Under the pieces are notes generated by a model. The model did no database searches and was not told where the DNA came from. It saw nothing but the letters and a program-made list of their open reading frames with translations. Positions 25,978 through 59,116 of a stretch of 64,000 nucleotides of DNA are shown one piece after another. Location of the stretch: the NCBI RefSeq assembly GCF_006345805.1, contig NC_043000.1:12276001-12340000 (forward strand). Reading direction: 5' to 3'. Source of the stretch: Octopus sinensis (Eukaryota). Made by a program: the position numbers and the translations under genes. The stretch's first letter is position 1, and the number at the start of each line of letters is the position of its first letter.

Positions 25978-26052
25978 TGCTATGATGGTTTTATTTTTCG
26001 TCTCTGAATGTACCATTTACTTTGGTACTTGTTGATAATGAATGTCTGAGCA
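25978..26052 (+). ncRNA. SNORD56: Box C/D snoRNA, U56-like copy 1 (subfamily B)
   Basis: Box C ATGATGG 25982, guide ttatttttcgtc, D' CTGA 26004, internal stem gtacca/tggtac, C' ttgataa, box D CTGA 26046; external stem ttcacaataag/cttattgtgaa. Confidence 0.85.
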
Positions 26053-26469
26053 ATACTTATTGTGAAACATAAGGTACAACTGTGTGGTTAAGAAACTTGC
26101 TTTGCAATCATGCGGTTTCAGCTTTGATATCACTGCAAGGCACCTTGGGTGTCTTCTAAAACCCTGGGCTGTCTAATACCATGTGAGAGTATTTGGCAGA
26201 TCAAAGCTTGCAGGAAGCCTGTCATACATGTGTATATGTATGTTACATTCCACAGTTTGTTGTCGCTTGATATTTTTTACTGGCATTATGACAGGTCACT
26301 CTGTACTTTTAAAGACCTATGGAATAAATAAATTAGTATTTCAGTGTATTTCAATGTTTGAACTAAAAATTTAATAAAACATTTTTCCATCATAAATCTA
26401 AAGATGATTACAGAATAAGTGCAAATATTCATAGACCAGATAGTTCTTGCTTCAGTCTGTTTGACTAAT

Positions 26470-27430
26470 TTTTGTTTTTAGTGGTTTAGTTGGGAAGAAC
26501 AACATACCATTCTTTCCAACTAAACTAAATGCCCCTGGCATTTGTAAGGCCTCCAAGACTGGTGAGATATAAAGTGATTAATGAGATGAGTGGGTTGAGA
26601 GGGCCTGAATTGAGGTACTACAAAACTAGCCATTCCCAAGAGCAGATGTTACAGTAGTGGCAATAGAAAAGGCAGAGGAAGAATATAGCACATTTCGGTC
26701 AGTGGTTGGAATGTTAGCAATCAACTATAATCAATTTAGTCTCCTTTTGGATGCTGTCTAGGATGTGTAAAAGCAGAACTGTCCCAGATGTGTGATCAGT
26801 ATTCCATTGTGGGTATCACTTAAATTTTGTTTAGGGTGAGTAATGGGAGCTAAGTTATTATTTCCTGGCCTTAAGGCTAATCTTTGAGATAGAGCCTTTT
26901 GCGGTATTGATGGTTTGAGATTATCAATGATAGTGGAGTTCAGCATCCAGTGGCTTTGAGGGTGTGTTTGTTCAATAAGGAAGTTTGATATTTTCTTTGT
27001 GTTGTGATTGTGTCCATTAAAGTGTCAGAGATTAGAGTGACATAACCTCAATGGGAACAGTTTTTGAAGTTTCTGTTCAAAGAGTCTGCAGGTTTCACAT
27101 GTGTTTTTATAGTTTGGTGTTGTTCTCATTTTTAGAGCTGTGAAGGCTTTAAGAAATATACATAGATGATCCAGTTGTTACAGAAATAATAACAAAAAAA
27201 ATTGTATTACTCACCTATCTGTATGCAATAAAGGCTTTTGTTACTCTTACAACTGATTTAAAAGTGTGGTATTTGAAGTCTCAAGAATTAACATTTATGT
27301 ATTATAGAGATAACATGGAAAAACAGATGTAAAACTGGAAAGTATTGTAATAAGCTCTTGATAACTTATACAATGAGTGTTCTTGCATAGCTTGTGATAG
27401 ATCTTATTTTTGCAGTTATATTTGATTATA
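26470..27430 (-). mobile_element. Unclassified degraded interspersed repeat (homologous to 51860-52810 and 58765-58905)
   Basis: Colinear similarity, e.g. caagactggtgagata, ttggaatgtt...caatcaa, gttcttgcatagc...tttttg(c/a)agttatatttgatta. Confidence 0.55.
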
Positions 27431-27579
27431 CTGCATTTAGCCACTCAGTGTCATCCTCATTTAGCATCTGCTTTCCATGCTGACATGGGTTAGATGGTTT
27501 GACTGAAACTGGTAAGATGGAGAGCTGCACCAGGTTCCAATCTGATTTGGTATGGTATAGAAGCTAAATCCATAGTAGT

Positions 27580-28532
27580 ACCCAGTATTTGCTTCACAAA
27601 TTTTTCAAACTTTGACTCCCCATTTTGTGGGCTTTCCTGGCATATACTGTCGGAAGTGTACCCTACCTTTATACCCCACCATGCCCTCAATGGATAAATA
27701 TCTCCCAGGGTTGTAAAATGTTTTATATGCATTTTGCACACAGTTGATGAGAGGTCTTATTTTAAATAAGGGATCAAAGTTTGGTTCTCCACATACTGGG
27801 GTACTGCTAGTGTCTCTTACATGTAAATACATTTATGGCAAAAAATGCCTGTATTTCATCTATGGTTGCAGGAAACCACAAGCTATCTTTTTTTTTCCAG
27901 CTTGTTTACATTCTGCATAACGGTTTGTTTCTGTAGTGATTGCTTCATGCAGGAAAAAAGGAAAAGTCTAATGGTTTCACTTCCTGACAAAGACTATGGG
28001 TAGACCCTGTCTCTTCAGAAAAATTGTTAATAAAAACTTTTTTTAAGTCTTTACTTCATTGTGGTGTTAAATCATCCTCGCTGCTGATGTCGTCGCCACT
28101 TTCAGTTTCTTCAGAACTGCTGCTTTCGGTTTCAGATACAGAAATATCCAATTCATTTTCGTCCACCATGTGCTTGTACCTCATTCATTCTTTTCCTTGA
28201 TATCTCAATATCTTCTGTTGAAAAGCCTTCAAATTCAGAATCACTGCTTGATAGCATGAAACTCCTCTCCATTTTCGAAGTTGAAAAAAATTAACACCGA
28301 AAAAATGTGGAAAAAAAATCTTCCAAAATTCACAGAGTTCAAATATCATGCCAAACGATGTCGGATACAATAACTCAACTGTCTGCAAAGTGAAATCACA
28401 CGTTTTCACAAATGTACTAAGAAAGATTTGGGTTCAAATTTACATTTAAATAACAATGGTACTCTTGGCCAGCTACGGCCGGATTGGTCTTATGATCCAA
28501 AAAATTTTTCAGCCAGTTTAGTAACGAAAGGA
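27580..28532 (-). mobile_element. piggyBac transposase remnant (PGBD4-like) with 5' TIR and TTAA
   Basis: FDPLFKIRPL...YNPGRYLSIE...KGRVHFRQYMPGKPTKWGVK; TIR gtaacgaaagga followed by TTAA at 28533-36. Confidence 0.85.
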
Positions 28533-31340: not shown

Positions 31341-34300
31341 AAAAACATAATTCATATTAGAAATGGTAAATACTAGTATTTTATAAAATGAAATTTTTTT
31401 TTAAAGACACCTCATCTCATGGAACCCTAGATTTTTTTCAAAGAACCTGCTCTAACAATCCTGATTTGATGCATTCTACACTGACATACTACAAGTGATG
31501 TCTGGTGCTCTGCAGATTTTGAAAAATAGGTTATAATTTTGTCATACATATGATTAATAAATATGTTATGCAATGATTCTTTTCTGCTTTATAATTTCCA
31601 AATGAAGTTTGTTAGTAATGTTTTACTTGATCTCTAGTGCACTACAAAGTCTAAAATGTCAAGAATCACTGATGTTGGGCCATGAAAATTTTAGGGGTGG
31701 TCTTGCCAGATATGTAGTGAAATGTGTTGATCTTAAAGTACATTTGCTGTAGGAAAGTAGGAAACCAGAAGATCCATCGCATTATTGTCCTTTACATAAT
31801 CAAACTATTTTACACTTATGTGTCCACTGTAAAAATTGCCCTGTCACCTTTTGACTAGAAAACAGAGACAATATTCTTCTGGTGGGTAATAAAAAAGAAA
31901 TTGTATGGTAGACAAGATTGAAAGGACTAAAGACACACCTTTGACCAAGTTCTCATCATATTCAAATACCACTTGAAAGGAGGTGGTGTTGGCCTGCAAT
32001 AAATATGCTGAAAGGTGGATCTAAGAGTGGCAAGTACTGGCTTGAACAACTGGAATACATGCCTACTAAAAAACAGCTAGAAGGGACCATTGCTCTAAGC
32101 AGTAAGAGAAATCTTGTCTATAGAGTGCCCCGATTGGCTTAAAGTAGATGTCGTTTTGGGAGATTTCATTTCTTTCCATTCTGTTGCTTTTGATGCCTAT
32201 TTTCTCACACTCACTTTGTTCCTGTAATATGTCCCTGTAATGTCCTCTTATCTGGTCTCCCTTGTGGCAATTAAATTCGTTTTGCTTGCAGTAATGAACA
32301 TCTCTTTACTTGGCCTACTTTACTTATCCTTTCTCTTAGGTGAGTGAACCAGTATTGGGCATCTGCAGGAGGTAGTGTCAATATAAACCTTCCCCTACCT
32401 AACACATTTCTCCAAATTTTTGGTCTTGTGACGATTTGAGATATTAATAATTTTTCAGACACAAATAGGCTCCGTTATTTCTCCAACTCATACTCTTGTT
32501 TCATTTATTTTGCTAATTAATACTTTGAAAAAGAAAGCTTGGTTTCATTTTCAAATTAGAACCACATCAGTTCACTTATAAATGTCTTAAGGAAGTTGCT
32601 ATGTCATGTCTTGCTCATCTATCCACTAAGAATCTCCAGTTCTCTGCATATGTAAGAAACAATTATTTGTACTGTTATAGATCTCTTTTAGATAAAATCA
32701 ATATAACCTAAATTACAGGGTATCAATTGGAATGTTCCAAGTTAACTGTTAATTTTTAGAAAGTAGAGTAAGGAAGGTGGGAAAAATCCAAGCTGTTTAG
32801 AGTTGGAACATAAAAGCAGGTTGTTTTAGATAATAAAAATAGAATTACTGTGGCTTGTATAGAGCAATATTCTGTCTATATCTCTCATATACATTTGATT
32901 GTAAGATTGTTTCATTTTTGGTAGTGGTGGGGGTAGGTCATTAAAATATATTCCAAAAATCTATCGTTGCCAATTGAAACTCACAATTATAAATGTTTGG
33001 GTCCTGTGTTATATATTATGTCGTTTTCTTCTTGGTTTTCTATCCTGTAGAAAGGTATTGTCCCTGTTTCTTAAGTGGTCAGAGTTGGATTTTGAATTTT
33101 TAGAGTTTTTTTGTTGTGTTTTTTTTTCTTTAGAACCCTGCATCTGAGCAGTCTATTTGCTTATCTCAACATATGCATAATAGCATGGTTTTTGTTTTAG
33201 AATTGGGTATGGCTATCACATTTATTATTAGTTGGTATGTATCGGTTCTAGGCAATAAAAGAATCAGAAGGGTACAAATGTTCCTACATTATGAATTGAA
33301 ATACTGTTAGAATTCACTGTTGCTCACTTATTTCAATTGTGATACAAGCTTCCTGTTTTAAAGTGATTGAGATTATAATCTGCCATCAAAATGTTAAATT
33401 ATGTGTCAAACACCAGCTTAACAATGACAATGTTATTTTGATTCATTATTTTCTAAATTAATTGAAACAAAAGCACTGTATTTTAGTTGAAATATGAAAA
33501 CAAAAGGGATAGTGTGTATCAGTAATATACTAGGATCAGTTCAATCAACTGTGTTCCATCCAATCTTATTTTGAGGACTTGTGGGAAATCAATATAATAA
33601 CTCTAAAAGATTAATGCATTTTGAGTACAGCTTCAAAACACATTAGCTTGTAGCTTATAGTAACTCAGAAAAACATGCTTATACAAGACTGGCTAATGAC
33701 TTAAACATTAAACTAAATTATTTTACCATTCTGTTAAAATTAAACTAAATCTAGATTAGTGTTCTAATACATTTTGGTGGAAATGTGTTACAAGATAGTA
33801 CCAAGGGATAGATGTAGGTTAACAATTTAGATATGGTTACTAGACATGAAATCAAATGATGATTCTGTGCAGATGAATTCAACTGATGCTAGGAAATCAA
33901 TATTTCACATGGTTGGAACATGCAATTTCCAGAGATATTCTTTCTAATAGCTGACCACTTCTCCCCATTGTTGGATTGACACCTCATTTGCAGCAGCATC
34001 TTATTCTGCCAATAAAAATTACTCCTTGCTTTCACATTGATCCCACTGCAATTAAAACAATATTTATTTAAGACTGTGTTATTACTGCAATTGTAGCATG
34101 GGCTTATCCAAAGACCCAGTCTTGGACAACTATGTTTTAACCCTGTTCCTGTATATCATGGGATACACAGGACATATTTCCCTGGCATCCATACATCATA
34201 TTTGATGTACTCTTTTACTCTTATTTGTTTCAATCATTGGACTGCAGCTATGCTGAAGCATCGCCTTTAGTTGAACAAATTGACTGCAGGGCTTATTCTT

Positions 34301-36482: not shown

Positions 36483-37310
36483 CAAAGAAGCTAAATAAAC
36501 CAGGCAGAATATCAATTATAGCCTAGAAAATGTGCTTAAGCAATGGATAAGTTTACTCAAAGTAGCTGCCCTCAGTTTCTGCCATGACCTCTGGAACCTG
36601 GCGCATGCGTTCTTCACTGCATTGGTATTGTAGGCAGAGTGGTTGGTGAGTCTCTCAAAAGTGTCCCACATATAGTAATCCATGGGATTACAATTGGTGG
36701 GATTAGGAGGCAAGGCAAGAAGTTGGTTCTGGTGAAGTCATAGAAATTCTCTGACAACCACTTCTGACTCTTTCTGGTGGTATTGCTAGGAGCTTAAGCT
36801 ATCACATGTGGCCTTCCAGCAACAATCCTCTCCAACTAGGGATTGATGCTCCAGCAGCTTCACATAGCTACGGCCCTATTCAAAGGAGTAGAGATGAATT
36901 CCAGTGTGCATACACAGAATGCTTGCTGTGTCACTTCCTGCTGGCCATGGCTTCATAGTCTGTGTTGCAGCTCTCCATGTCCTGTCTTACAGCCTGTACA
37001 GTGTTCAGAGAGCATTGAGCAGCAGTCACGATGTCTGCATTTTGATACCTGGTACGAATCCTCATGATACAAATAACCCTTTTCCAATATTCAGATGGCT
37101 TCCATTCACCCATGTCAGCTAACGTTATTCTCACTCACAAATTTAATCTTTATGCTCTCCAGTGTTGTTAGCTGTTCACCAGTAACATCAAGCTGTTCCT
37201 GAAAATAAACAACACACACAGTATGTCTTAACATCATGTGATAGTTGTAAGAATTGTATCGCTTTCATTCAAGCTGTCCTCATAATTTCCAGTCTTATGT
37301 GAAAACGTAC
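36483..37310 (-). mobile_element. Tc1/mariner (maT/rosa-like) transposase remnant, internally deleted
   Basis: N-terminal WKPSEYWKR...AAQCSLNTVQAVR and C-terminal PPNPTNCNPMDYYMW (WPPxSPDxNPxDYxxW motif) followed by VKNACARF. Confidence 0.75.
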
Positions 37311-38079
37311 CTGGACTTGGTGGAATATTACCCTATTACCAATGAGGATTGATGTCTGGCCATAGAAAATTTGCCAGGGCAGATTTTGTCTGATCCATCC
37401 ATCCATCCATCCATTCATGCATGCATGCATGGATGGAAAAATAGATGTTGAAATAACAATGTTAATGTGTGTTCAGTGAGAAAATATCTGGTGATGTAAT
37501 TTCGGATTGCAAATGATATAAATATGCTGGGTAAATAAGCATGATTGAATTATAGAAGATGAAAAAAAAAAAATTGTTATATGCAGAGAAACCTCTATTT
37601 GGATGTTGTCTCACTGTTGTGTGATATATTCTGTTGATGAATTGAAGTTATAACTAAAATGGCAGCTTTTTTTAAATTCTTTTTGTTTTAGTTATCATTG
37701 AAATAATTCTTCACTAATGAGTGTCTGTTCAAATATTTTTATTCTTTAAAATTTATTTTAGTGTATTTGAAGAGTTCCATCGTTATATCTGTGATGTGAA
37801 ATTTTTCTATTAAACCAAATGGTTGTGGAGATTGAACTATATGTTGGATTAATTTTGAATTAAAGAGGCTAACTCTTGTCTCTTTGGTCTTTAATGCCAC
37901 ATTGCCTGAAATAAAATCATTTTTTTCATATGCTGAACATAGAGATTTATTGTTAGTTAATTAATATTTGAAATATTAACTAGGAATAGTACTTCGGATT
38001 TGGTGTAATACTTATTTACAAATAAGACCTATTGTTTTTATTGCTTATTTATATTTCTCTTTTCTTTTTCTTTTTTCAG

Positions 38080-38169
38080 AATTCCCATTCTCAGAAACCT
38101 CAGAAGATTCTGGTCATGAACCCTTAGCAGTGCCACCACTAACTACTGCTGCAGCAGCAGCAGGACCAT
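38080..38169 (+). CDS. MTA1: MTA-family gene: 90-nt phase 1-1 exon in the BAH insertion (probable cassette)
   Basis: Long pyrimidine tract + CAG acceptor, GTAAGC donor, open frame FPFSETSEDSGHEPLAVPPLTTAAAAAGP, in phase with the next exon; no sequence homology recognised. Confidence 0.7.
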
Positions 38170-40825: not shown

Positions 40826-41016
40826 TTCCTTCTCTGGAAGAAGATTCCGAAGAGATCAATGATGACATCACAGAGAAACAACGCCATCAATTGAAGCACA
40901 GAGAACTCTTCTTGTCAAGACAAGTCGAGACTTTACCAGCAACACATATTCGAGGAAAATGTGTTGTCACACTTTTAAATGAAACAGAATCATTATTATC
41001 ATATTTGAACAAAGAG
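40826..41016 (+). CDS. MTA1: MTA1/2/3-like exon (BAH domain C-terminal half)
   Basis: [47 protein letters not shown]; TGCAG acceptor, GTATGT donor; 191 nt, phase 1-0. Confidence 0.97.
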
Positions 41017-44000: not shown

Positions 44001-44535
44001 GATAACTCATTTTATATGGTGATATTTAAACAAAAAACTTTAGATTTCAAAGTTCACTTGAAATTAGTTTTGTAACAAAAATGCTCCCGTAAATTTAGAC
44101 TCTTAAGTTGCTTAAAATATCACTTTAATATAATAAATATAGCATAAGAAATAGTTTTATATAACCAGTTTAAATTTATGATTATTTCAAAAAGTAATTG
44201 AAACATTTTAATATAGTGACAAAATAGTTAATAACTTAATAAAAAAAATTGTTCATTGTATCATCTTCTCGCTTCACACTGATTTTCTTTCAATGATTTA
44301 TGATAATCTCAAATTAGGAAACCTATAATTCACATATTGATCTGAATTTGAAGAATATTCAGTCTTGAAAAAGGGAAGAAAAATAGTTTGCAACAAAAAA
44401 GAAAGATTAAACCTGATCTCATCATTAGTTTATCTTTTTTCTATATTAATTAATCTTTTGCATATCTTTTCAAATTGAAATATTGGAATAGTAAGACAAA
44501 AATCTGTCTTAAAATTGAAAAAAAAAAAAGGTAAA

Positions 44536-44606
44536 TGCTATGATGGTGTATTTTTCGTCATCAGCTAATGTACTTTTGTACTTGTTGATAATTGCATACC
44601 TGAGCA
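44536..44606 (+). ncRNA. SNORD56: Box C/D snoRNA, U56-like copy 2 (subfamily A)
   Basis: C ATGATGG, guide tatttttcgtca, D' CAGC, C' ttgataa, D CTGA; external stem aaggtaaatgct/agcattttacctt. Confidence 0.88.
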
Positions 44607-46263
44607 TTTTACCTTCCTTATTTCTTTGAAAAGTTTTTCTGTTAATGAAAAGTACTCCATAAATAATATTATTGACTTGAACATTACAATATATTAGATC
44701 TATTATAACCTAGTGAAAACAATTTTTTTTTTTCTTACTTGCTGCATATTATCTTCAAAATTTTTTTAATTAGCAAAGGAGTATAAACAAATAGATAACT
44801 ATGTTCAGTATTTGCAAAGAAATGTTCTAAGACTGAATAATAAACACATATATGTTAGGTGCTCAGAAGTAAATGTGTAACTTAATGCTTTCATTAACCA
44901 ACCTACTCATGATCACCCTTTTTCATATTTTTTTAATTTTTACCTGTATATATTAAAATCGAAATATTGTAACAAGCACAACTATGTCGTGGACATAACA
45001 GTTGTGTTTTAATTTCCTTTAGAAAAAGTGAGGAATTGAATCCTTAATTAACTAATAATAAAGGACCAATTTTTCAGTAAACCAGGATGTTCCTCAGTAC
45101 CTGCCTGTTTCCATTTTTTGTTAAAAGCCATTTAGTTTATGAAGAAACATTTTTATTTCTAATACTTCTTCCTCTTTTCCTCAAATTTATCTAAATGTCA
45201 GGATCATTGTTTTGAACTAATTAGAAAATCACCTCATTTGGTCAGTTTTGTAGAGTTCATGTGCACAACAACTTTAAAATTAGTGATTGGTTTCATTGTA
45301 GCTGGAAAAGTTGAGTTACATTAGAGAATGCAAGGATACGCACTAGTGTGTCTGGAAGAGATAATACAGCTTCTGGGGGTCTTGTAATGCAAATGATCTA
45401 GCCATCTATAAAGTTCCTGGAAACTATCCACCCAACAAGTTGCATAATGAATATATGGGTATGAGAGCCAAATCAACTTTATTCTTACTGGGAAAAGAAA
45501 CAAGCTGTTGGTTGTAAATACCATTTGACATTCTTTGAAAGAGAAGGTGACCAATAAGTTGTGGTTGAAATCAGAGAAGAATTGGAAATAACAGATTAGC
45601 TTCTTTAAAGTATACTTTCCCAATGGCACAAGCTAATGTTTATTTTTTAGGGATGAAGCCTATGACATACATGATTGATAGCTAGCAGCTATCTACTTGT
45701 TAGAGCAGAGGAGGAAAAACAGTATCTATGGCTTTTTTGCAGGGGCTTGAGAGAAGTCAGATTTTAATATCATCAGAATGGAGATCTGGTTCAAATAACT
45801 ATTTGCACCAGATTAGTGTCTGTCATAGAGGTACCCAAAGGCCAAGTGTTGATTTTAAACTGACCAACACAAGAACTGATTTAGTCCATTGTCTGATCTT
45901 TACTACAGTTTCTGTCGATTCAATTTTACTCTGGAGACTATGGTAGAAGTTAGTTGTCCAGAGTGTCGGAGTGTTGTCTTTGTTAAACAAGAAGTCAGGA
46001 CTAATTAGTAGGTAGAGCAAATAGATGTATTTTATGATCTGTACTTTGAAAAGCAGCATATGTTTTGGAATATGGTGTGTTATATTAAGATATCATTGAG
46101 GTGGCTTATGCCTGAAATGACATTGTCATTTTTTAAAAATTCATATTTCCATGTTGTTATGGAAGTTTATGGTGACTATTTATTAAAGGAGCCGTTAAAT
46201 GAATACTTGTACATCATGAGTGATATCAGTTAAAATACCAATGAATTCTTTCCATTTGGTAAA

Positions 46264-46345
46264 TGCCGTGATGTTGTATTATTTTTCGTCATCAGCACTT
46301 AGACCATTTAGTTTTGGTATCTGTTGACAATTTAAAATCTGAGCA
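46264..46345 (+). ncRNA. SNORD56: Box C/D snoRNA, U56-like copy 3 (subfamily A)
   Basis: C GTGATGT, guide ttatttttcgtca, D' CAGC, C' ttgacaa, D CTGA; terminal stem ggtaaatgc/gcattttacc. Confidence 0.85.
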
Positions 46346-47271
46346 TTTTACCTGTTTTAATCCCCTTAAGTTTGAATTTTTTTTCCAGTCCTATCTTAAA
46401 CTAAGCCTGTAGGTATTTCATTTCCACACACTTGTACCATCACACTATACTATGTATCACCCTAGTTTACAATCAGTATGCTCTGGGATTCCTACCTCTT
46501 CAGCATAGCTAGTCATTGCTAGGTTTACTTTGGGGCCTCTCAATTCTAAGTTTTGCTTCCAAGCTTGAAATTTTTTCTCTAAATCTTTGATTCAACTATG
46601 AAAACCAAGCCATTGACATACAGAAGTTCCTGTGAACAACCATTTAGTTTTCAGATTACTTTGTAAAACGTTATGCCTATATACTCACATTGCTTTGAAT
46701 TAATCGTGCATTATTTCATAGCTTCCAGATTTTGATGAGGTGATTATTCTTAGAATGACATTGCAGGATAGACGTTAAAGGCCAGTTCTAGCTAGTTTGA
46801 ACATAAACTGGGTAGAATATTTTGACTGGTTCTGGCTAATTTAAATGCTAAAGAGTTAAATTATTCTTATGGCCTGAATGACTGTAATATAAAGAGGACT
46901 ATGAACCAATCCCTATTGTACTCCACCCTGCCTATTATATTCCTTGCTGAACTCATTAACTCACCTAACTGACAATATTGCATACATGTTTTGTATAAGC
47001 CATTCATCTATTCCTTGTTTTCTAAATGACTGCTAGACTGCATACTGGGAGATTTTGTTAATGACTTTCTAAGTTTAGAAAGACTAGGAAGAGGGCATTG
47101 GTGATACCTTCTGGTATAAATCTGTCATATTTTTTAATATCTGTTGATTGCAACAATGTTTATAGAAGATATTTTATGCTTATGTACTTCTTACTGATGT
47201 AACAAAATTTAGTAAAGTTTGTTTATAAAACCAAAGTTCTTTCACTGAGATGAATTATTTTCTCTTTTCAG

Positions 47272-47389
47272 GATACATTTTTTTATTCATTAGTATATGA
47301 TCCACAACAGAAAACATTGTTGGCAGACAAAGGTGAAATTCGAGTTGGTTCAAAATATCAAGCAGAAATTACTCCTTTACTTAAAGAAG
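47272..47389 (+). CDS. MTA1: MTA-like exon (BAH end / ELM2 start)
   Basis: [39 protein letters not shown](G); AG/GT; 118 nt, phase 0-1. Confidence 0.97.
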
Positions 47390-48315
47390 GTAATATTTTG
47401 TTTAGTGTTGGCATTACTACACTTGCTGTTTCTTGTATATGTCTTAACTTCTTCCATTATTGATAATTATATGCATGTTCTTCAGAGAAACAACTTAGAA
47501 TTAAATATAGAGACAGTTTGTTTCACTAATGATTGGGAAGAAGTTGAGGCAAGATGTTGGTCAGAACTCTATGAATATGTTATTCTAGTTTAGAAATTTA
47601 TGTATACAGTTACAGTGTCATTATGAAGTTGTTAGATGGTGTGCAAAGAAAGATATTCAATACAAAAACTTGTAATATACATCCCAATATCCATTTGGTA
47701 GTCATAGTAATCAGGAGTGATATAGAAACTGTAGTAAGTGGTGAGATTAAAAATATATGGATATCAAGTGTTCTGTCTAAATACCTGGACATTGCACACA
47801 CATATATTACCTGGGCATTGCTTTGTACCCATGTTAGTTTACTTACAATACCATTCTGTATCTACTGACCCAGTTTCCATTTTCTGTTTCCTGTGACTTA
47901 TTATTACAGCTTTCATAAATATTTTCATCAAATAGTTAGTCAGGTCATCTTAAACTAAGCCTGTAGGTATTTCATTTCCACACACTCGTACCATACACGG
48001 AACAGTACATAGATGTAATACCTAAGAAGAATTAACTACCTGTATGTTTCTATTAATTATAAAAATTAGGGTTTGGAAGGAAAGATTCTTTTAAACTTGA
48101 ATTTGATCTCTCCAATTTTCTAGAATCTAGACTACCATGATTTGAACTAATTTCTTGATTTTTATCTGCTAATGAAATATCAATTTGGGTGGACCAGAAA
48201 TAGCTGAAGATAAAGAGTTTATGGTGACTATTTATTAAAGGAGCCGTTAAATGAATACTTGTACATCATGAGTGATATCAGTTAAAATACCAGTGAATTC
48301 TTTCCATTTGGTAAA

Positions 48316-48394
48316 TGCCGTGATGTATTATTTTTCGTCATCAGCACTTAGACCATTTAGTTTTGGTATCTGTTGACAATTTAAAATCTGAGCA
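48316..48394 (+). ncRNA. SNORD56: Box C/D snoRNA, U56-like copy 4 (subfamily A)
   Basis: As copy 3 with a 3-nt deletion after box C. Confidence 0.85.
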
Positions 48395-48842
48395 TTTTAC
48401 CTATTTTGATCCCCTTTGAATTTTTTTCCCAGTCCTATTTGTTGGGTCTGTCCTAGTGTATTTAAATAATTGGTCAGTTAATAATATTTATTACATACTT
48501 TCATTTTTCAGCTAGCCTCTTTCTCTTATGATAAATATGTAATTAGTTAATGTAGTTTCTCTTTCTCTATTAGTTTTGTTCATATAGTTTTCATTGACAT
48601 TCAGAGACAAAATTATATTGTGTTTGTCAGGAGTGTGCTGTAAAGATTAATGTCGGTATGTAATATGAGAATTGCACACAGGTACTTACAAGAAAAATGG
48701 TAGTTGGTGATGATATGGGAAATGAGAATAATTTTAGCATAAGACGAAGGTGTCTGGTGTCATATTTTAGAGATTGTTTGTAGCAAATATTTGAAGTAAA
48801 ATTAACTTTTTTTTTCTTTTTTTTTTTTTTTTGTGTTTATAG

Positions 48843-48951
48843 GTGAAAAAGATGGAAGAAGCTTGGATGAACTTGAGCAGTTAATTTGGCTGCCTGGCCC
48901 TGATAACACCTTAACACCAAAAGAAATTGATCAGTTTTTGATATTAGCCAG
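48843..48951 (+). CDS. MTA1: MTA-like exon (ELM2)
   Basis: GEKDGRSLDELEQLIWLPGPDNTLTPKEIDQFLILAR; poly-T tract + TAG, GTTGGT donor; 109 nt, phase 1-2. Confidence 0.95.
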
Positions 48952-49548
48952 GTTGGTTTACAGAAATTTTGTTTATAATGAACTATTCTAAATTGTCCAA
49001 AGTGTTCTTGGTCTTTTCAGCCAGCCAAAAATGTTACTGTGTTCTAGGAAAAAAATTTTTTTCTTCACATTTCACATTTTATAGAAGATGAATTCAATCT
49101 GTTGAAATTTATTTTAAAAAAAAGTTTTATTCTCTTTCCACTTGTTTGTTATGAAAACACCAGGCCAGAGTTTTCTTGTATTTAAATCAAAATACTGAAT
49201 GAGACAGTGATATGATGTGGTTTCACTTGGTACACTGTCAGAAATTGCAACAATGTGAATTCCTTTTCCTCAAGGTTTCTTAGTTATTTTTTCCTTGTGT
49301 ATTTTTTATTTTTATAACACCCCCCCCCCTGACCCCAAAACTTAAAAAAAAATTATGCTAGTTTCAGATTTAGTAATAGTAATTCTGATTTTGAATGTTT
49401 TTATGGTTTTTTTCTTCTTTCTTTTGAATGTAACAACTAACAGAAATGCTATAAGCACTAATATGGAGTGGACTTTGAACTAGATGTTTCAATTTCTAAA
49501 TTGAAAAGCAATCTATAGTTTAAAAGTGAATTCTTTCCATTTGGTAAT

Positions 49549-49630
49549 TGCCATGATGTTGTATTATTTTTCGTCATCAGCACTTATGCCATTTAGTTTT
49601 GGTATCTGTTGACAATTTAAAATCTGAGCA
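49549..49630 (+). ncRNA. SNORD56: Box C/D snoRNA, U56-like copy 5 (subfamily A)
   Basis: C ATGATGT, same guide, D' CAGC, internal stem atgcca/tggtat, D CTGA. Confidence 0.87.
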
Positions 49631-50890
49631 TTTTACCTATTTTGATCCCCTTTGAATTTTTTTCCCAGTCCTATTTGTTGGGTCTGTCTTAGTGTATTTA
49701 AATAATTGGTCAGTTAATTAATATTTATTACATACTTAGACTAACACAGCAGCTTTTAACATGGCATGTTGGTTTGATATATATCAGATATCTAATGGAA
49801 TTTAGGTTTTTGATGTTTGAAAGTCTTTTTGTTGTCAAAGTGGGTTTTTTCTTCTGAAATATATGAATATATTTTAGTTTAATACTTCCAGACTAAACAT
49901 ACCTGTGGTTAACTCTTATCTAGAAGACGTGTGATGAAATTACTTTCTTTTATTTAGGCATAATGTATCCATGAATACATTATCCAATGTGTCCTTTTTT
50001 ATAAGACATTGAGGGGTTGCATGTGGAAGATGTGGCTACTAATTTGTAGATGGTCAATGACTACATAATAATACTTTCATTAGCTTGTCAGGCTATTTAT
50101 TATGTGATCTATGAGATGTTTTCACTTGATAACCTTGCTATTGCCTATTTTCGTTATTAAAGTTTTGAGTTGATAGCATGAATAACATAAAGCACAAAAA
50201 TAATTTTGAGTTTCAAATTACTTACTTCAATGGTTGAGACATTTAATACAATAGCTTCATCCACTTGACCCATAACCTAACTTTAGACAAGGACATTATA
50301 TATTCAGTTTGAACTGTTGCAGGTTAGGGATTGAGAAACAAGCAATGAATTGTTTGAAGATTTTTTTTGTCCTTCTTAACAAGTGTCTTCTATAGCCTCA
50401 GACTAACCAAGGCTTTGTCTGTGAAATTTAGTAAAGAGAACCTGTGTAGAAATTCAGCATATATGTTTGTTGTTTATGGCCTAAACAAAGTGCTTTGACA
50501 AATGGAGATTGATAAAATAACTACCAGAAGTACTGGGAACAATATGACTGATTAAACCTGAACATAACTGGGTAAAGTTAGAATAACAACAGAAATGATT
50601 TAGATCAATATAGTCGTTGTAGATTATTGGAGAGTAATGTGTGTTTATTGAGCATTCTATATTACAGAATGTGTATATGTATGATGGGTGGTTGTAAAGT
50701 CGTTTTCTCGTGTGTGAAAATAGTGATGTAGATACATATATAAATAATATACAGATTAAAAAGAAAAATACACAGAGCAGACATTGAATATTGGCTCCAC
50801 CTAGTGTTGATGAATCCACTCCTAGTTTATTATGATTTAGACAAGAATTTTTTTCACTTTGGTTCACAATATAAAACTCTTGTTTACCAG

Positions 50891-50990
50891 GTCTGTTGGT
50901 ACATTTGCTCGAGCTTTGGATTGTACCAGTACTGTGAGGCAGCCAAGTCTTCATATGAGTGCAGCAGCAGCTTCAAGAGATGTCACATTG
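50891..50990 (+). CDS. MTA1: MTA-like exon (ELM2)
   Basis: [33 protein letters not shown]; CAG/GTAAGT; 100 nt, phase 2-0. Confidence 0.98.
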
Positions 50991-51859
50991 GTAAGTACTG
51001 CATTACTCTTTCATCCTTACTCCAGTCGTATGTCCAATCAACAGTCATCATTATTATCATTTTAACAGCCATTTTCCCAAGCATGTATGGGTTAGGTGGA
51101 AGTTGTTGAAGCTGAATTTCTATGGCCAGATACCCTACCTGTTGCCAACTATCAAAGGTTTCCAAGTGAGGCAATATTTCTCCATAGACAGACATGTTTC
51201 CTTCCACAAAAGATTGGAAACAGACACTGCCTGTATGATGATATATTCTTTTACAACTATCATGTAATATCACAAGGAGAGGCTGATACACATGCACACA
51301 CATACACACATGAACTTTTAGTTTCTGTCTGTAGAAATGAACTTCTGTTAGTTGTGCACACTGAGGCAAAAATGTTTTGTTGTCTTTCCAGATGCACAGC
51401 TTCTTAATATCACAACTATTACCTTGTGTCTATTTTCCATCAAAGGATTTTGAGTAAAATACTTCAAGTGCATATTTCATTTCCAAATTTGTATTGATTT
51501 TGTTAAACATCAGAAGGTTAACTATCAGAACCTCTTGAATAAAACAAATGTCAAGGTACCGTCATAAATTTTATGGGGATTGTTATGTGAGGATATCTCC
51601 TGTAAAATATTAAATGTACTTACAAAATATTCTGAAAGATGATCAGAATTTAAATGTGTGTTACTGTAATGTAAATGTAATAAATCACATAATCCATATG
51701 TTTTACTTTAAAAAAAAAAATCATACCTGGGAATTAAAATATTTAAATATTACTTTTAAATAATTAAAGGACTTTTTTATGAAATAATAAGATGTGAAAC
51801 CTATAGATACTAAAGAAAGTGTGTAATCATTCTGGCCAAGTGTAGTACTTGCTTCAATT

Positions 51860-52810
51860 TGCTTGACTAAAGTTTTGTTTGTTTCTAATGGTTTGGTTGG
51901 AAAGAGCAGTTTATGCCCATGGCATTTGTAAACCTTTCAAGACTGGTGAGATAGATGTAGTTTTCTTGAATTAGAGCTTTTAGGAAATTCTAGAGGGAGA
52001 AAGGACTGGGGAAAGTGGTCAACGTGTGGTTTTGATGGAAAGGCAGAAAAACTATCAGTGACAAGAGGGAGAGATGAGTGAGTTTGGAGGGTGTGGATGG
52101 GGGTTCCTCAAGCCCAGCTGAAGAGCATTTGTAATAGTAAAGGTAGAGTGAGATTACAGCTCATTCAAACCTGAGATTGGAATGTTGACAATCAATTGCT
52201 TGTCAATCAGTTTAGTTACTTTTTGATCAGGTTTGAATGTCTGAGTAGAAGCAGTGTTATCCAAGATGTGTGAACTATAATCCACTGTATAGGGTTATTA
52301 GTAATACAAAGGCCAGTCTTTGTAGTGTCAAGGACATGATATTATCAATAATGGTGAGGTTGAGCATCTGTTGTGACTTTGCGGGGTTTGTTTATATTTT
52401 GGGATGAAGTGTGATATTGTTTTCTTTGTGTGTAATTATTGTTCATTAAGTTGGTGAAGGAGACAATGTAAATTTGGTGTGAAGTGTGTATGTAGTTTGG
52501 TGTCATTTGTATTTTTTAAAGATGTGAGGGATCCAGATGTGCACAAATGCTCCAGTTGTTGTCACAGAAGTACACATTTGTATAATCCGTCCTTGTCTGT
52601 TAAGGGTACCACATAAATTTATCTGTATGCAGTCAAAACTTACATTGCTTTTACAGTAGTATCTTTAAAAGTGTAGTATTTGAAGCATCATTTAGTTATT
52701 ACAGAGTTAACAGGAAAAAACAGAAGTAAAACAAGAAAATATTGTAATTAGTTGTTCTTGCATAGCTTTCAAACAGATTTTATTTTTGAAGTTATATTTG
52801 ATTACAAATT
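51860..52810 (-). mobile_element. Second copy of the unclassified degraded repeat
   Basis: Colinear with 26470-27430. Confidence 0.55.
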
Positions 52811-52956
52811 GTACAATTAATCACCCTGCTTGAATCTCTAGATTATTTTATATATATATGTTTTAGTGGAAGGTTTAAACATTGATCATACTGTCTTTAG
52901 ACTGAAGTTATTTTTGTTGGTGCTAAGTGGTGCTAAATCTTTCACAATAAGGTAAC

Positions 52957-53031
52957 TGCTATGATGGTTTTATTTTTCGTCTCCGAATGTACCATTATCT
53001 TTGGTACCTGTTGATAAAAAATGTCTGAGCA
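52957..53031 (+). ncRNA. SNORD56: Box C/D snoRNA, U56-like copy 6 (subfamily B)
   Basis: C ATGATGG, guide ttatttttcgtc, D' CCGA, stem gtacca/tggtac, D CTGA; external stem ttcacaataa/ttattgtgaa. Confidence 0.83.
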
Positions 53032-56000
53032 TTTTATTGTGAATTTGCAAACATAAGAATGGTTAAGTTACATAGTTTTAGGTTCAATATCGCTGCACGA
53101 TACTTTAGGTTGGTGAATGCCATATGAAGGAATTCAGGTGATAGGAGCTGTGTATGCTCAAGTTTCACACATATGACTATTTTAGTAAAGTGGTGCTAAT
53201 GTTTGTCATGACTATCCACCCTGTGCTTTCATAAACTTGTGTAATAAAGAAATCCCTTAGTTGAAAAACAGGAAGAATTGGCTTGAGGAAGAGCATCTGG
53301 ATGGAAAATCCTGCTTCAACTAACCCTCTGTACAGACCTAGCATAGAAGAACAGATAATGAATAAAAACACACACACATACACACTATTCAAATTATCAG
53401 TAATTCTCTCTCAGCATTTCAGACCCCAGGGTGTGCATAACATCATATGACCAATCTGGCAGTTGATTTATGTATAATTTAAATTTTCACTTAAAAACAT
53501 TAAACAAATTCTGTTCAAAACTAGAGCAAGGGAGACAACCTAAGTTATATGTACAGTGAAAATTGCAGAGTATTAAACAAAAATTTGTAGGATATATTCA
53601 TAGAATATTTTGTAGCTGAACATATTACCATTTTACCCATTCAGCCAATTGTATGATGATATTAACATGGCACCAGGCATATCTTTATTTGAAGCAACCA
53701 TAACTAAACATTGGGTATTATGCTGTACTCCATTATTTACTACAGTATTTTTTGAAGTGGTCAGAAAACCCAATACAAGATGTGTTCATTTAATGTCCAC
53801 CTTTCCATGCTTACAAAGGTCAGACAAAATTCATTGAGACAAGTTTCTTGTGTTTTTTTTTATAACTGGATGCCCTTCCTACTACCAATCTTTTAAATAA
53901 TGCTGTGTTTCCCTTAATGTTTTGAACACAAAACAGAACAGCAGCTAAACATGATTTCTTGGAAGACTACAAACTAGTGATACTATTTATTTGTATGACA
54001 GCAGCAGTCATTTACAACTAGTGCTTGATCTCAAGGCAATAAATGAACACAGGCATATCCCACTCATGTACAAATATACACACGATGGGTTTTCAATTTC
54101 CATTTACCAAAACCAATTACTAGTTATTGGCCAGTAGAAGACCCTTGTCCAAGGCATTGCACAAATTGAACCTAAAGCCATGTGGGTGAGGAAGCAAACA
54201 TCTTAACTGCAAAACACTCTCTCCTTATGTATATATATATATTTAATGGTTTCTGTACACAGAGTTAAATGTATGCCTACTGGTGAATTTGGAGCTCCTT
54301 GTTATCATCTAGTCTACTTAACATACAGTTGTCATAAACAGTTAAATTTAGTCAACCATAACATAAATTTCTGCATTCTATCATGCATTTAAAATCCAAA
54401 TATATATATTTTAACAACCCGAACCACAATCTAATTATCGTTCAGCTGTTACACTGAAGGACAGTCTGCAAAATCAGTATGATATATACTGTTGCAATAG
54501 ATATATTCATTGCTTATAGTTAATTATAAGGACTAACATGCATGTTTAATCTTTACTTAGTTTAAGGTTCAAATTCCATGCAAAGTTAGCAAAACTATAA
54601 GTAAAAATTTCGAGAGCATTTCATAACAAAGATATTTCATATTTAAAAATTTAGGATACTGTGGCATGTGAGAGTACACTAAAATTTTATTGAAACAATA
54701 AAAGTGGAAGGGAGACAACCTTAATTCTATTGTAAAGTGATAAAAACGCCTTGTAATACATAAATTTATTATAGCTATGAAAAAACTTTTCTAGTGGAAC
54801 TTGATAATTTTCGAGAACAGCATTCTATTCTTCAAACAATTACATCCAGATATTAATGCTTCCTTAAACAAGTCTATATATGAAGAGCTTATTTTCAAAA
54901 CCAGATATATACATCAGAATAACTTTTGAGTAATTGAGGAAACGACTTGAATATATCTGATATTGATTGGAAGACTAAGATTTGTCTACTGTTTATATGG
55001 TATCTATCCCAGTTTGACCAAAAAATTTTCACATGCATTTTCACATGCATGAAGCCAGCTTGCAGATTGTGTTTTAATGGTTATCATGAAATTGACCAAA
55101 CATGCACTTATACTGATTTTGAAAGTAAGTTCCTCATATAATGAACCGTCTTCAAACTGAATTAATAGCTGGGAATTTAGTAGTGTTTTTGTTGATTATC
55201 TGAGTTTATTGGTGATAGGAGTTAATGTTATATACATATAAGAAATGCATAAGCTGTATGCTAAACTAAATAAACAGTGACAAAATTTCAGAGAACACAC
55301 AGGCATAAGACCAGTTCTTGGACAGACTCAGGGCAGATTTTGGAGGTAGAGGGAAATAACTGAAAAGGTTGCAAACAACGACAAAAGAACTGTGACTAAC
55401 AAACAACTAATTGATTGCTTAACCAGTGCAATTAAACAAATGATCAATTAGTTAGTTGGTTTGACATTTAACCAATTGACTAATAAAGAAGTAATCCTGA
55501 ACTAATGTGTGTGTGTTATTAGCATAATGACCCTCCCGAGACACAAAATTTGTTTCAACACACAAATTCACACCAAGAATTTTACAAACCAAATGCAAAA
55601 ATGAAATAAAAATGCTTTATAAAATTATTGAGCATGTTGTCTAAAAGTTAAAAAGCTAAAATAGATTTCATGAGATGAGCTCAATTTGATGGAGATGGTA
55701 GTAGAGGTGATGGTTGTTATTTACTAAGTTAGTTGAGCTATAATACTCCACTGTTCTTTACTTCTCACATGTGAGGTGACTGAGGAAGGACTGGAATTGA
55801 AATAACAGCAGGTGAATCATGAGTACCATTAACAGGTGTGGTGAATTTCTGATAGATGAATTGTCTTGAATGAATTAGGTTTCAGTTGTTTACCATACTG
55901 TGTTGCTTCTAAATAGTGTATTCATTCAAGATCCTAAAATATTGAGAACATTATTAAAAATCAGTTTCTGTCAATATACAATGTTAGATGCCCCTCCTAT

Positions 56001-56209
56001 TGACAACCCTCACCTTTTTCCAAGCTAGGTACAATTTCACTTTGGGAGAAAGGAAACTAGTAGCCTTTTTTGATGATGATGGTAGAGGTGGTACCTATGC
56101 ACCATCATTTCGTGATGTCGAGACAGTGGTATGCATACTTGCCCCCCCCCCCTAAATATATATAAATATATATATACACATATATATTGGCACTTGTGTA
56201 CCGGTAATA

Positions 56210-56485
56210 CATGAAAAACAACATTTGAGCGTGGGTGTTACCAGTGCCGCTGGACTGGCTCCTGTGCAGGTGACATGTAAAAATACCATTTCATCATGGC
56301 CGTTGCCAGTATAGCCTGACTGACTCTTGTGCCAGTGGCACGTAAAAGCACCCACTACACTCTCGGAGTGGTTGGCATTAGGAAGGGCATCCAGTTAGAG
56401 ACTCTGCCAGATCAGATTGGAGCCTAGTGCAGCCATCTGGCTCACCAGTCCCCAGTCAAACCGTCCAACCCATGCCAGCATGGAA
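56210..56485 (+). mobile_element. RTE-tail SINE
   Basis: ggcacgtaaaagcacccactacactctcggagtgg...ccgtccaacccatgccagcatggaa. Confidence 0.75.
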
Positions 56486-59041
56486 ATATACATACAGTCA
56501 GATGTTCTGCAACAGGCTTCATGTGTGTGTATTCATTTGTTTCCTTTGATGTCTGTTTTTCCATGTTAACTTGGTTTAGACAGGAAATTATGGATGGAGC
56601 CTTGCTTGTGGATAATCATCACTATTTATTGCTATGCCTAGCATATTATCCCAAACATTCATATGTGCACATGCATGCACACATGTACATAAATTCTTCC
56701 AGTTTCTGCATACCAGATTACTTCAAGGGACACTTTTTGACTTAGCTATTGAAGATGCTTGTCCAGAGTGCTATGCAATGGGAAGTTGTTATGGTTCCTA
56801 TCTTTCTGAGAAGAAAAGGAAGTATGGTATTGGAAAGATCAGAGCAGTGCAGTCAGAAAGTGGGATTTTGAACTGGTAGATTTACGTGTTTCAATGAGAA
56901 GATGGTGGAAGATGTGGGAGAGTAGCCTCCTAGTTAGAGGCTCCATAGCACTCAGCCATATACAACCAAGTACTTATAAATGAGCTTGGTGCAATGCCTT
57001 TCTTTATATTAACAACACAACAACCATCACCTGGCCTAAGTCACAGTACCACATTACCTAAAGCTTCTGCTACACAACCTCCAACATTCTCTATTGTATC
57101 ATTTGCTGACTTTGAAGTACCTTACATTGCAAAACAGGCTTGTCACATTGCTATTAACTTTTGTGAGCATGCATTAAAAACTGACCAACTTGTCATCACT
57201 CATTTCAACAGATTGAGCTATTCCATTACCCATTTATCAGTGTGTGGCATCTCCACACATAATGGATCCATGTGCTCAAAGAATTGCAACAATGATTCAT
57301 ATTGACTCAGAATTTTTTTTTCTTATTCCTTCTGTCCCTACATCTCTTTAGTTCATTAATCCCATTCTTATCCTTAAGCTCTCCTCTCACCTAATTTTCC
57401 ATCTCATCTTCACCTACTTTTCATTTCTTTCCTTCTCTCTCCTACTACTTCTTGTATTCCCCATCAGTTGCAGCCAGTTTCTCTAGCAGATTCTAAGACT
57501 TGTTTTTCATTTGCACACACACACACACCTATATATACTTACATATATACATGCAAACATGTTTATGTAAGCCAATGTATATATGATTCTTTTACTTGTT
57601 CAAATCATTGGACCGAAGCCATACTGGGGGTTTTAGCTGAACAAATCAACTGTAGTCCTCTCCCACCCTTGTTTTAATTTTTTTTTTCTTTTTGACACAT
57701 GGTACATATTCTATCAGTCTCTTAGCCGATCCACTAGGTTTAGGGGATGTAAACAAACCAACGCTGCTTGTCAAGCAGTGGTGCGGAACAAACACAAAGA
57801 TATGCATATGCAAAGACAAATGCACAAACATTTATACAGACATAGATAAACATGTGAAAAAATATATTTGTGGTGCAAAAATGGATTTTTTTTTATAAAG
57901 ATTCCTTTGTAACTACCCAGTTTCAGGTTAATATCACTGTGCTACATCTTTGCAATTTGTCAGTTTGTATAGCCCTTCCCTAACCAGTGCCTTCTCAGTG
58001 AATTACCGAAAAAATCTGGTGTGTGTGTGCATGTAATTTCTGCTTAAGTGCTGATGTTGATATTTTTGTTGAATTTACAATGGTATAGTTATGTGTATTA
58101 GAAAACTTGTGAAATAAAAGATTCCTCTACTTGATAAATAGAAAAGGGCTGGCAATAGGAAGAGCTTTTGGCCGTAAAATCTTGTCTCAACTAAATCTCC
58201 ATCCAAATGCACGCTGGCATGGAAAAACAAACATCAAATAAGTGAAAGTGTGTGTCAATAGATTTTACACATACACTGGTGCAGGCATGGTCATGTGATT
58301 AAAGAGCTTGCTTCCCAACAATGTGGTCTCTGGTCCAGGTTCACTGTGTGGTCTTTTGGGCTAGTGTCTTCTATTATAGATGTAGACTGATCAAAACATC
58401 GTGACAGGATTTGGTTGACGAGAACTAGAAGAACTGTCTGTGTGTATGCGTCTTGTTTTGACATTGTGTAATGGTTGCAAATGAGCAATGTTGTTCAGTT
58501 CTAGTCTTCTTTGAAAAACTTGTCTGGCCATAAAGAAATTCTACCTGGAAACAAATGAGGGCTGGTGACAAGAATTGCATGCAACTGTAGAAAACCTGCT
58601 TCAACAAAATTTTGTCTTGGCCCATGAAAGAGTGAACATTAGACAGTGATGATGACATACATAAATATCTATATATATATAAAGCCATACATGTATGTGC
58701 ATATATATATGTATGTTCATGTACATATGTGTAATGCTTATTTTTTTTTAAGTGTAATTTTGGAAGCATCAACAGTTTACATTAGGTATTATAGAATTGA
58801 CTTGGAAAACTAGTAGAATTCAAAACGATGTGCTGAACTTGAGCAATAACACATGTTCTTGTATAGTTTTGAAACTGATCATATTTTTGAGGTGATACTT
58901 TCTACACTTTCTCATTTTGTGTAATATAGTCTAGTTTGTCTATGTATATCTTTGGAAGACAGACAGTGATTGCAGTTCAGATATTTTAAATGTAAAGACC
59001 AGAGTATTTGTGCTGTTTAACTAAATCCTTCACAAGATAAC

Positions 59042-59116
59042 TGCTATGATGGTTTTATTTTTCGTCTCTGAATGTACCATTTACTTTGGTACTTGTTGAT
59101 AAAAAATGTCTGAACA
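59042..59116 (+). ncRNA. SNORD56: Box C/D snoRNA, U56-like copy 7 (subfamily B)
   Basis: C ATGATGG, guide, D' CTGA, stem gtacca/tggtac, D CTGA; terminal stem has one mismatch. Confidence 0.8.

Follow-up and report, generated by a model that had tools for sequence, protein, structure and literature searches.

In human cells, the box C/D small nucleolar RNA (snoRNA) SNORD56, or U56, guides the formation of Cm517 in 18S ribosomal RNA (rRNA) (PMC4288182), and its gene resides in NOP56 (PMC9454646). The U56 site is common to human and Arabidopsis, where it is Cm471, and switching of snoRNAs between host genes is known to be common (PMC3511168). The present analysis concerns a 64,000-nucleotide (nt) stretch of the Octopus sinensis genome (NC_043000.1, positions 12,276,001 to 12,340,000 of the forward strand; hereafter, the window), in which seven elements, named here c1 to c7, lie in sense orientation within the gene of MTA, a subunit of NuRD. 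Judging from their sequences, these elements are very probably box C/D snoRNA genes that are encoded in introns and paralogous to one another, and that represent SNORD56/U56 in octopods. Multi-copy intronic families in one host are represented by mammalian SNORD115/116 and SNORD113/114, and by the series of isoforms occupying consecutive introns in Drosophila.

Seven units with a U56-type guide

The 11-mer TATTTTTCGTC occurs in the window exactly seven times, always on the plus strand (start positions 25992, 44549, 46280, 48329, 49565, 52971 and 59056). When one mismatch was allowed, 11 matches were found against 1.38 expected, a number reached by none of 100 shuffled sequences. The units that contain the exact matches measure 85-96 nt from stem to stem. 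Each begins at its 5' end with the stem GGUAAAUGC, followed by box C (RUGAUG and then G or U), 2-7 nt, and the guide UAUUUUUCGUC; further on come a D' element, a short hairpin, the C' box (UGUUGAYAA) and a variable spacer of 8-9 nt, and the unit is closed by box D (CUGA) and the stem strand GCAUUUUACC. The sequence-only reading of this locus had proposed seven sense copies with box C, guide, D', internal stem, C', box D and terminal stem, begun (25978, 44536 etc.) at the UGC directly 5' of box C, and all these elements are present in 7/7.

For comparison, the MTA loci of Octopus vulgaris (L001), Octopus bimaculoides (L002) and Argonauta hians (L003) were used. A covariance model built from 20 octopod copies (R1) found in the window exactly the seven units, at 96-110 bits, and had no match on the minus strand. 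The only other match, a C/D-like candidate at 41755-41851 (+) with UGAUGG, CUGA and a 5-bp terminal stem, obtained 18 bits (E-value about 2) and was rejected; it is shared with O. vulgaris, but Argonauta does not conserve it, and it is probably due to chance.

By sequence, the units can be divided into type A, with c1, c6 and c7, type B, with c2 alone, and type C, with c3, c4 and c5. Between the groups, only a core of about 85-95 nt can be aligned, with 76-81% identity, in agreement with the earlier remark that the spacers diverge; where alignment is possible, most differences fall within the C'-to-D spacer, the loop of the hairpin and the zone of D'. Copy c1 (25972-26059, 103 bits with R1) has box C AUGAUGG, the guide UUAUUUUUCGUC, D' CUGA, the hairpin GUACCA/UGGUAC, C' UGAUAA and box D CUGA, and its outer stem CACAAUAAG/CUUAUUGUG extends the structure to 25963-26066. 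The other type A copies are c6 (52951-53038, 110 bits), with CCGA as D', and c7 (59036-59123, 104 bits), in which AC instead of GC after box D breaks the innermost pair of the terminal stem (pair 16-93, unpaired in 2 sequences). In c2 (44530-44614, 96 bits; fold z-score -3.1), the guide UAUUUUUCGUCA is followed by U, D' CAGC, the hairpin GUAC/GUAC, C' UGAUAA and box D CUGA, enclosed by the stem GGUAAAUGC/GCAUUUUACC. Type C copies are located at 46258-46353 (c3), 48310-48402 (c4) and 49543-49638 (c5), all seven units being on the plus strand. Box C in the form RUGAUG plus G or U and box D in the form CUGA are found in 7/7 units, and C' is recognisable as UGAUAA or UGACAA. Across the 20 octopod copies, the UGAUG core and 3/4 of the box D columns are invariant, the single variable column being due to CAGA in the c6 orthologue of O. 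vulgaris.

The terminal stem GGUAAAUGC/GCAUUUUACC, of 8 pairs, is 96% paired across the 20 sequences, and type A has the additional outer stem described above for c1. For the terminal stem and the internal hairpin together, 95.8% of cells are paired, versus 30-55% with slid partners. In every copy, the hairpin ends 2 nt 5' of the C' region, and its stems differ between copies (GUACCA/UGGUAC, AUACCA/UGGUAU, AUGCCA/UGGUAU, GUAC/GUAC and AUACU/AGUAU), the closing pair being A-U in 7 sequences and G-C in 7. When whole units were folded as single sequences, boxes C and D came to lie side by side (z-scores between -1.7 and -3.5). RNAalifold also paired box C (GAUG) with the guide (CGUC), a helix likewise drawn in the Rfam structure of SNORD56; it was kept out of the model, as it was judged an incidental product of two constrained sequences.

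Copies c2-c5 have in common with the Rfam SNORD56 consensus both AUUAUUUUUCGUCAnCAGCAnUU and GUUGAyA...UCUGAG. The guide and D' context reads AUAuUUUU..UCA-A-CAGCAgUU in the consensus and AUUAUUUUUCGUCA-U-CAGCAcUU in c2-c5, while the C' box reads GUGUUGAuA and CUGUUGACA, respectively, and both end with UCUGAG. The register is UAUUUUUCGUCA-U-CAGC in c2-c5 and AUAuUUUUcaUCA-A-CAGC in the consensus. Global alignment of c2 with the consensus gave 48/67 identities, with all boxes in equal order. Thus, the guide, the D' spacing and the match of the C' box bear out the proposal of a U56-type guide carried by units resembling box C/D snoRNAs. The CAGC D' box that the sequence-only reading had given for vertebrate U56 is found in c2-c5, but c1 and c7 have the canonical CUGA and c6 has CCGA, in each case 1 nt closer to the guide.

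The guide can pair with GACGAAAAAUAA(+) over 12-14 nt. Its complement lies within GGTAGTGACGAAAAATAACAATAC, a sequence found in more than 120 metagenomic contigs and placed by Rfam in the eukaryotic small-subunit (SSU) rRNA family SSU_rRNA_eukarya, at a distance of about 460-520 nt from the 5' end. All of the 20 octopod copies have one and the same 11-nt guide. As to a second guide 5' of box D, where the C'-to-D spacer has only 8-9 nt and is variable, no consistent complementarity to three complete eukaryotic rRNA operons was found.

Several observations weigh against this assignment. Rfam at gathering thresholds gave no match in the whole window, and in permissive scans, which covered units among c2-c6, many C/D families scored 13-23 bits in narrow windows of 116-121 nt; SNORD56 (RF00275) reached 17.4 bits for c4 (E-value 0.22) and 17.2 bits for c5 with the threshold at 36, no match to it was listed for c2 or in an 8.8-kb scan over c2-c6, and unrelated C/D models scored equal to it or above. 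The check with the Rfam SNORD56 model that had been recommended is, therefore, formally negative. This model appears too narrow to decide identity, and standard annotation misses the copies because its best scores are of 17 bits against a threshold of 36. Apart from the database, the final base of box C is G or U instead of A, the CAGC D' box of c2-c5 is degenerate, and the target sequence was seen in SSU rRNA of eukaryotes other than octopus. The invariance of the guide is inflated by the fact that the 20 aligned copies were first picked by its presence; the subsequent search with R1 added only three guide-variant or dead copies.

According to the proposed mechanism, each unit would be transcribed as part of the MTA precursor mRNA (pre-mRNA) and released from the intron, the long terminal stem bringing boxes C and D together, and would assemble with the fibrillarin, Nop56, Nop58 and 15.5K proteins. 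The element UUAUUUUUCGUC(A) of 12-14 nt, located 5' of D', would then pair with the universally conserved 18S segment GACGAAAAAUAA and direct 2'-O-methylation of the cytidine equivalent to human C517. The predicted position of methylation in octopus 18S is the C (or the neighbouring G) of GUGACGAAAAAUAAC. The sequences themselves establish the structure of the units, their host and orientation, their conservation between species and the history of the copies, and it is from these that expression, assembly into ribonucleoprotein and methylation of the target are inferred.

The choice between C and G depends on the position of D'. Type B/C reads CGUCA-U-CAGN, as in vertebrates, and the fifth nucleotide 5' of D' pairs with the C517-equivalent C. 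Type A reads CGUC-U-CUGA (CCGA in c6), so that, with D' 1 nt closer to the guide in the alignment, a strict reading of the fifth-nucleotide rule selects the neighbouring G. Accordingly, c2-c5 would target C, and for c1, c6 and c7 the reading of D' decides between G and C. One may tentatively consider that these are two ancient subtypes with different jobs, type B/C methylating the C517-equivalent and type A the adjacent guanosine. Apart from the 1-nt offset itself, this possibility is favored by the canonical CUGA in 6/8 distinct type A sequences, and by the occurrence of both subtypes in Octopus and in Argonauta, which indicates that they predate the split of these lineages. Moreover, the D' region of type B/C (UCAUCAG) is complementary to the C' region (CUGUUGA) and that of type A is not; hence, the internal architecture differs between the subtypes. 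On the other hand, D' boxes are often degenerate, and type A may be read as UGAA or CGAA, which keeps C as the target; c6 has CCGA, and decay is seen precisely among type A copies (c1 of O. bimaculoides, c6 of O. vulgaris, and c7). A fuller version, in which two ancient U56 sub-lineages methylate adjacent Cm and a lineage-specific Gm while their copies are seeded by intron-to-intron copying of DNA segments of about 200 bp, seems to us doubtful. If true, it would represent neofunctionalisation of a guide via a 1-nt register shift, and the 1-nt change of the D' register makes a simple, testable prediction of a shifted target.

The MTA host gene and the distribution of copies

Translation of the exons in the window gave 100% identity to Octopus MTA3/MTA1 proteins, in which BAH, ELM2, SANT and GATA domains are present; this confirms the suggestion that the host encodes a NuRD subunit. 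At the O. sinensis locus CM016862.1 (L004), positions 26919-64000 of the window are matched with 100% identity. The exons, all on the plus strand and with AG/GT boundaries, were mapped as follows: exon 3 at 38080-38169 (matching FPFSETSEDSGHEPLAVPPLTTAAAAAGP of Octopus MTA proteins), exon 4 with the BAH domain at 40826-41016, exon 5 at 47272-47389, exon 6 at 48843-48951, exon 7 at 50891-50990, and exon 8 with the SANT domain at 63631-63819. The mapping of exons 3-8 also establishes the predicted sense orientation in MTA introns, with c2 and c3 located in intron 4, c4 in intron 5, c5 in intron 6, and c6 and c7 in intron 7. Copy c1 is located 12,020 nt 5' of exon 3. A search with regular expressions and relaxed tblastn showed that the window does not contain the canonical exons 1-2; c1 is, therefore, placed in intron 2 by synteny only, with reference to the gene models of O. 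bimaculoides and Argonauta. In O. sinensis, the RefSeq MTA3 model XP_036358570.1 has its first exon at 36919-37053, and this exon is non-homologous to other MTA proteins; the canonical exons 1-2 (MAANMYRVGDYVYFE...), which the models of O. vulgaris, O. bimaculoides and Argonauta include, are missing from it. Its annotated 5' end is probably wrong.

All of the significant R1 matches in the four octopod loci (26/26) are inside the MTA gene and on its sense strand. To call the set an array is to use the word loosely, the copies being dispersed over 33 kb in five introns, with no tandem arrangement. In vertebrates, the optimal position of an intronic snoRNA is about 70 nt from the 3' splice site. 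It speaks against the snoRNA assignment that the distance from the copies to the next 3' splice site ranges from 440 to 12,020 nt, none being near this optimum, and that two introns carry two copies each. As for the idea that the locus ties rRNA modification to MTA transcription, what stands is only the generic consequence of intronic location; no special link between NuRD and ribosome modification is implied by the arrangement, and the copies do not establish a functional coupling.

The O. vulgaris locus is 98-99% identical to the window and contains c2-c7. Its c6 orthologue has box D changed from CUGA to CAGA, which is a further point against function of the whole set, and its c7 orthologue bears a G-to-A change that breaks the hairpin. 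The c1 orthologue is unseen because the region falls in an assembly gap. A gap of 100 N at L001 27010-27109 ends the colinearity with the window (window 12156-13277 and 29842), and the sequence just upstream of it matches window 12156-13277 in inverted orientation, which points to an inversion or a misassembly in either the window or the O. vulgaris assembly. In O. bimaculoides, whose locus is 86-93% identical, c2, c5 (L002 53040-53145), c6 and c7 are present, and c1 is dead, with box C AGGAUG, D' UUGA and box D deleted. Copies c3 and c4 are absent from the O. bimaculoides MTA locus, the c4 site being empty and c3 not found in intron 4. All substitutions between c2 and its O. bimaculoides orthologue (3/3) fall inside the C'-to-D spacer; this copy also has an orthologue in O. 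vulgaris.

Argonauta hians has copies on the sense strand of MTA introns 2, 4 and 6, which are otherwise unalignable with those of Octopus. Two type A copies occupy intron 2, two type B/C copies and a guide-mutated one intron 4, and one type B/C copy intron 6. The element at L003 39783-39881 has intact boxes and the mutated guide UAUUUUCCGCGAUCAG, and is likely a pseudogene duplicate of the neighbouring copy at 37578-37676. Copy c2 is 86% identical to the Argonauta copy a4, located in the matching intron, and the Argonauta copy a5 is the positional counterpart of c5 in intron 6, with 26/26 critical positions (defined below) identical. Over 40 kb, similarity between O. sinensis and Argonauta is confined to exons, snoRNA copies, one non-coding island and a few short repeat matches. 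No copy was found in the MTA loci of Lottia, Mactra, Solemya and Lingula with filters off, the best matches being of 14-27 bits and without boxes. Judged from these alignments, the family has been resident in MTA introns 2, 4 and 6 since before the Octopus-Argonauta split.

Outside the window, an eighth paralogue (c0) is found about 1 kb 3' of MTA exon 2, at L001 15820-15921 and L002 15420-15526. Its sequence does not differ between O. vulgaris and O. bimaculoides, in spite of a background divergence of about 10%. The guide of c0, AUAUUUCGUCAUCAG, contains three U instead of five, so its pairing with 18S would be shorter.

Birth, death and constraint of the copies

Amplification within the MTA gene, as had been proposed, is real: in O. 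bimaculoides the site of c4 is unoccupied, and c3 has a mosaic structure. The insert bearing c4 (about 202 bp, 48295-48497) is 96% identical to the c5 locus at 49525-49737. Copy c3, found within a 1.4-kb insertion absent from O. bimaculoides, matches c4 with 95% identity along 231 nt, of which 80 nt belong to the c4 pre-insertion flank; it is a recent duplicate of c4, and c5 is the likely source of both. The mosaic consists of 46164-46394 (corresponding to 48216-48438) followed directly by 46393-46446 (corresponding to 47947-47998), an order of pieces reversed relative to intron 5; this suggests that the duplication passed through an intermediate of tandem or circular form. Since the flanks were co-duplicated and there are no A-tails, c4 and c3 were copied at the DNA level, and retroposition in the manner of snoRNA retroposons (snoRTs) was rejected as the origin of the new copies.

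Copies c1 and c6 belong to an old paralogous block of about 1.8 kb with 67-73% identity, in which the snoRNAs themselves are 90% identical. When window 25290-27556 was compared with L002 32309-34725, a 377-bp segment containing c1 was found between blocks A and B in O. sinensis and behind block B in O. bimaculoides; upstream of c6, the paralogous block (51385-52804) is arranged as in O. bimaculoides. Either the segment was transposed locally in the O. sinensis lineage or the assemblies differ. The set is, thus, amplified as the sequence-only reading had it, but the copies are not equivalent: c3 and c4 are recent, orthologues of c1 and c6 are damaged elsewhere, and the stem of c7 is weakened. 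The family evolves by birth and death: short stretches of DNA, about 200 bp in length, pass as copies into other introns (from c5 to c4 and then to c3), and other copies decay.

The effects of selection were assessed at 26 critical positions, i.e. the UGAUG core of box C, the 11-nt guide, six positions of C', and box D. Between O. sinensis and O. bimaculoides, 1/104 such positions was substituted versus 222/3004 in the flanks (p = 0.0035), and the rest of the unit changed at about the flank rate (19/248). In positional counterparts from Octopus and Argonauta, 24-26 of the 26 critical positions are kept, versus about 75-83% elsewhere in the unit. The earlier contention that conservation of the elements argues for function is strengthened by these two comparisons. 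A less favorable picture is obtained from entire units, whose substitutions between O. sinensis and O. bimaculoides amount to 5.5% against 7.4% in flanks (p = 0.12), and from the pair O. sinensis-O. vulgaris, in which 7 changes per about 355 nt approximate the background and one of them destroys box D of c6. A test of core versus flank that counted gaps (p = 2e-6) was superseded by that for substitutions only, which gave the above value of 0.12, and we relied on the element-wise test. Selection clearly acts on the family, and probably not on every copy.

These results bear on the possibility that most or all copies are non-functional relics of local segmental duplication of a snoRNA-derived piece, their similarity being due to recency or gene conversion, with a working U56 elsewhere, for example in NOP56. 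We consider it improbable. Such an origin would accord with the absence of c3 and c4 and the dead c1 in O. bimaculoides, with the damaged box D of c6 in O. vulgaris and the weakened stem of c7, and with the lack of a significant reduction in the whole-unit substitution rate. The spacer of c7 equals that of c6 in O. sinensis and not in O. bimaculoides, which hints at gene conversion. The identity of 92-96% among c3, c4 and c5 includes the flanks and, because these are equally similar, it is uninformative on function. Relics would not be expected, however, to show what is seen in Argonauta, which keeps intact copies of both subtypes in matching introns amid unalignable surroundings, or to accumulate substitutions that avoid the boxes and the guide and not the rest of the unit; in addition, there are compensatory changes in the hairpin. 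Retention in Argonauta, the pattern of substitutions and the compensatory changes together require that, in each lineage, at least some of the copies be under selection. The relic explanation may still be true of c1, c6 and c7 taken individually.

Very improbable, in our opinion, is a role of the units beyond rRNA, either in cis, through splicing or stability of the MTA pre-mRNA, or as smaller regulatory RNAs, with the C/D shape serving only as a processing or stability module. The unusual host, a chromatin regulator rather than a translation-related gene, and the many copies in a single gene, all in sense, could be cited in its favor, if only indirectly. Yet the sole invariant element apart from the boxes is complementary to a universal 18S segment in the SNORD56 register, MTA of the four other lophotrochozoans functions with no such element in its locus, and broadly expressed genes of any function host snoRNAs (PMC3511168). 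Finally, a genome-wide repeat resembling short interspersed elements (SINEs) is unsupported as an explanation, all matches in 340 kb of octopod loci being inside MTA and in sense.

Other features of the locus and relation to known systems

The non-coding island mentioned above is located in MTA intron 2 at 32705-32862. Its identity amounts to 82% over 192 nt with Argonauta (L003 27902-28086) and to 97.6% with O. bimaculoides. It contains stops in all six frames, has no Rfam match, and is the only conserved element in 40 kb besides exons, snoRNAs and the few short repeat matches. Members of a SINE-like repeat family, about 100-400 bp long and 75-95% identical, lie in either orientation at 4536-4639, 6183-6487, 9646-9828, 18447-18631, 21012-21404, 27451-27550, 56299-56486 and 59862-60090, and the repeat occurs also in the O. 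vulgaris and O. bimaculoides loci. The first 10 kb of the window (1-9700) are dominated by microsatellite-like arrays of the TATG/TACA type; a run of N at 1049-1148 marks an assembly gap, and an open reading frame fragment resembling the reverse transcriptase of long interspersed elements is found at 4800-5380.

Taken as the octopod counterpart of SNORD56/U56, the seven copies are cephalopod additions to a known snoRNA family, and no new kind of system. An ancient family common to plants and animals would thereby gain cephalopod members, which escape Rfam annotation by threshold and are, therefore, probably missing from current octopus genome annotations. The main interest of the locus resides in its well-resolved history of birth and death, a clean and dated example of intronic snoRNA multiplication and loss in one host gene, and in the 1-nt register variant.

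Resemblance to SNORD56/U56 and to plant AtU56 extends to the single guide upstream of D' in a box C/D snoRNA. With SNORD56 the octopus units share one spacer nucleotide followed by CAG(C), with the fifth nucleotide opposite the C of GACGAAAAAUA, as well as the C' box GUUGAyA, the 8-9 nt between C' and D, and complementary D' and C' regions that enclose a short hairpin; the target site, too, is conserved across eukaryotic 18S (PMC4288182, PMC3511168). Differences are also apparent. SNORD56 has about 71 nt, and the octopus units are longer (85-96 nt) owing to their longer hairpin and terminal stem. Their host is MTA and not NOP56, there are at least seven copies instead of one, box C ends with G or U, and a second subtype exists in which a canonical CUGA is shifted by 1 nt.

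The empty site, the mosaic copy and the dead orthologues fit the 'constrained drift' described for mobile snoRNAs, whose host genes are interchangeable; as in those, the host gene and position vary by lineage and new copies appear in new introns (PMC3511168). A relocation from NOP56, as the sequence-only reading had conjectured, would be one more instance of such host switching. Unlike snoRTs, c4 and c3 carry 60-100 nt of the source flank on each side and no A-tail, and, in contrast to mobile snoRNAs, all of the octopus copies seen are inside one gene. With clusters of the SNORD115/116 type and the Drosophila series, the octopus family has in common sense paralogues across successive introns of one unit and a copy number that varies between related species. 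It differs from the SNORD115/116-type clusters in that the host is a conserved protein-coding gene rather than a non-coding one, and that the copies are few and dispersed, with two introns containing two each. Moreover, SNORD115/116 are orphan snoRNAs, whereas the guide of the octopus units has a canonical target in rRNA.

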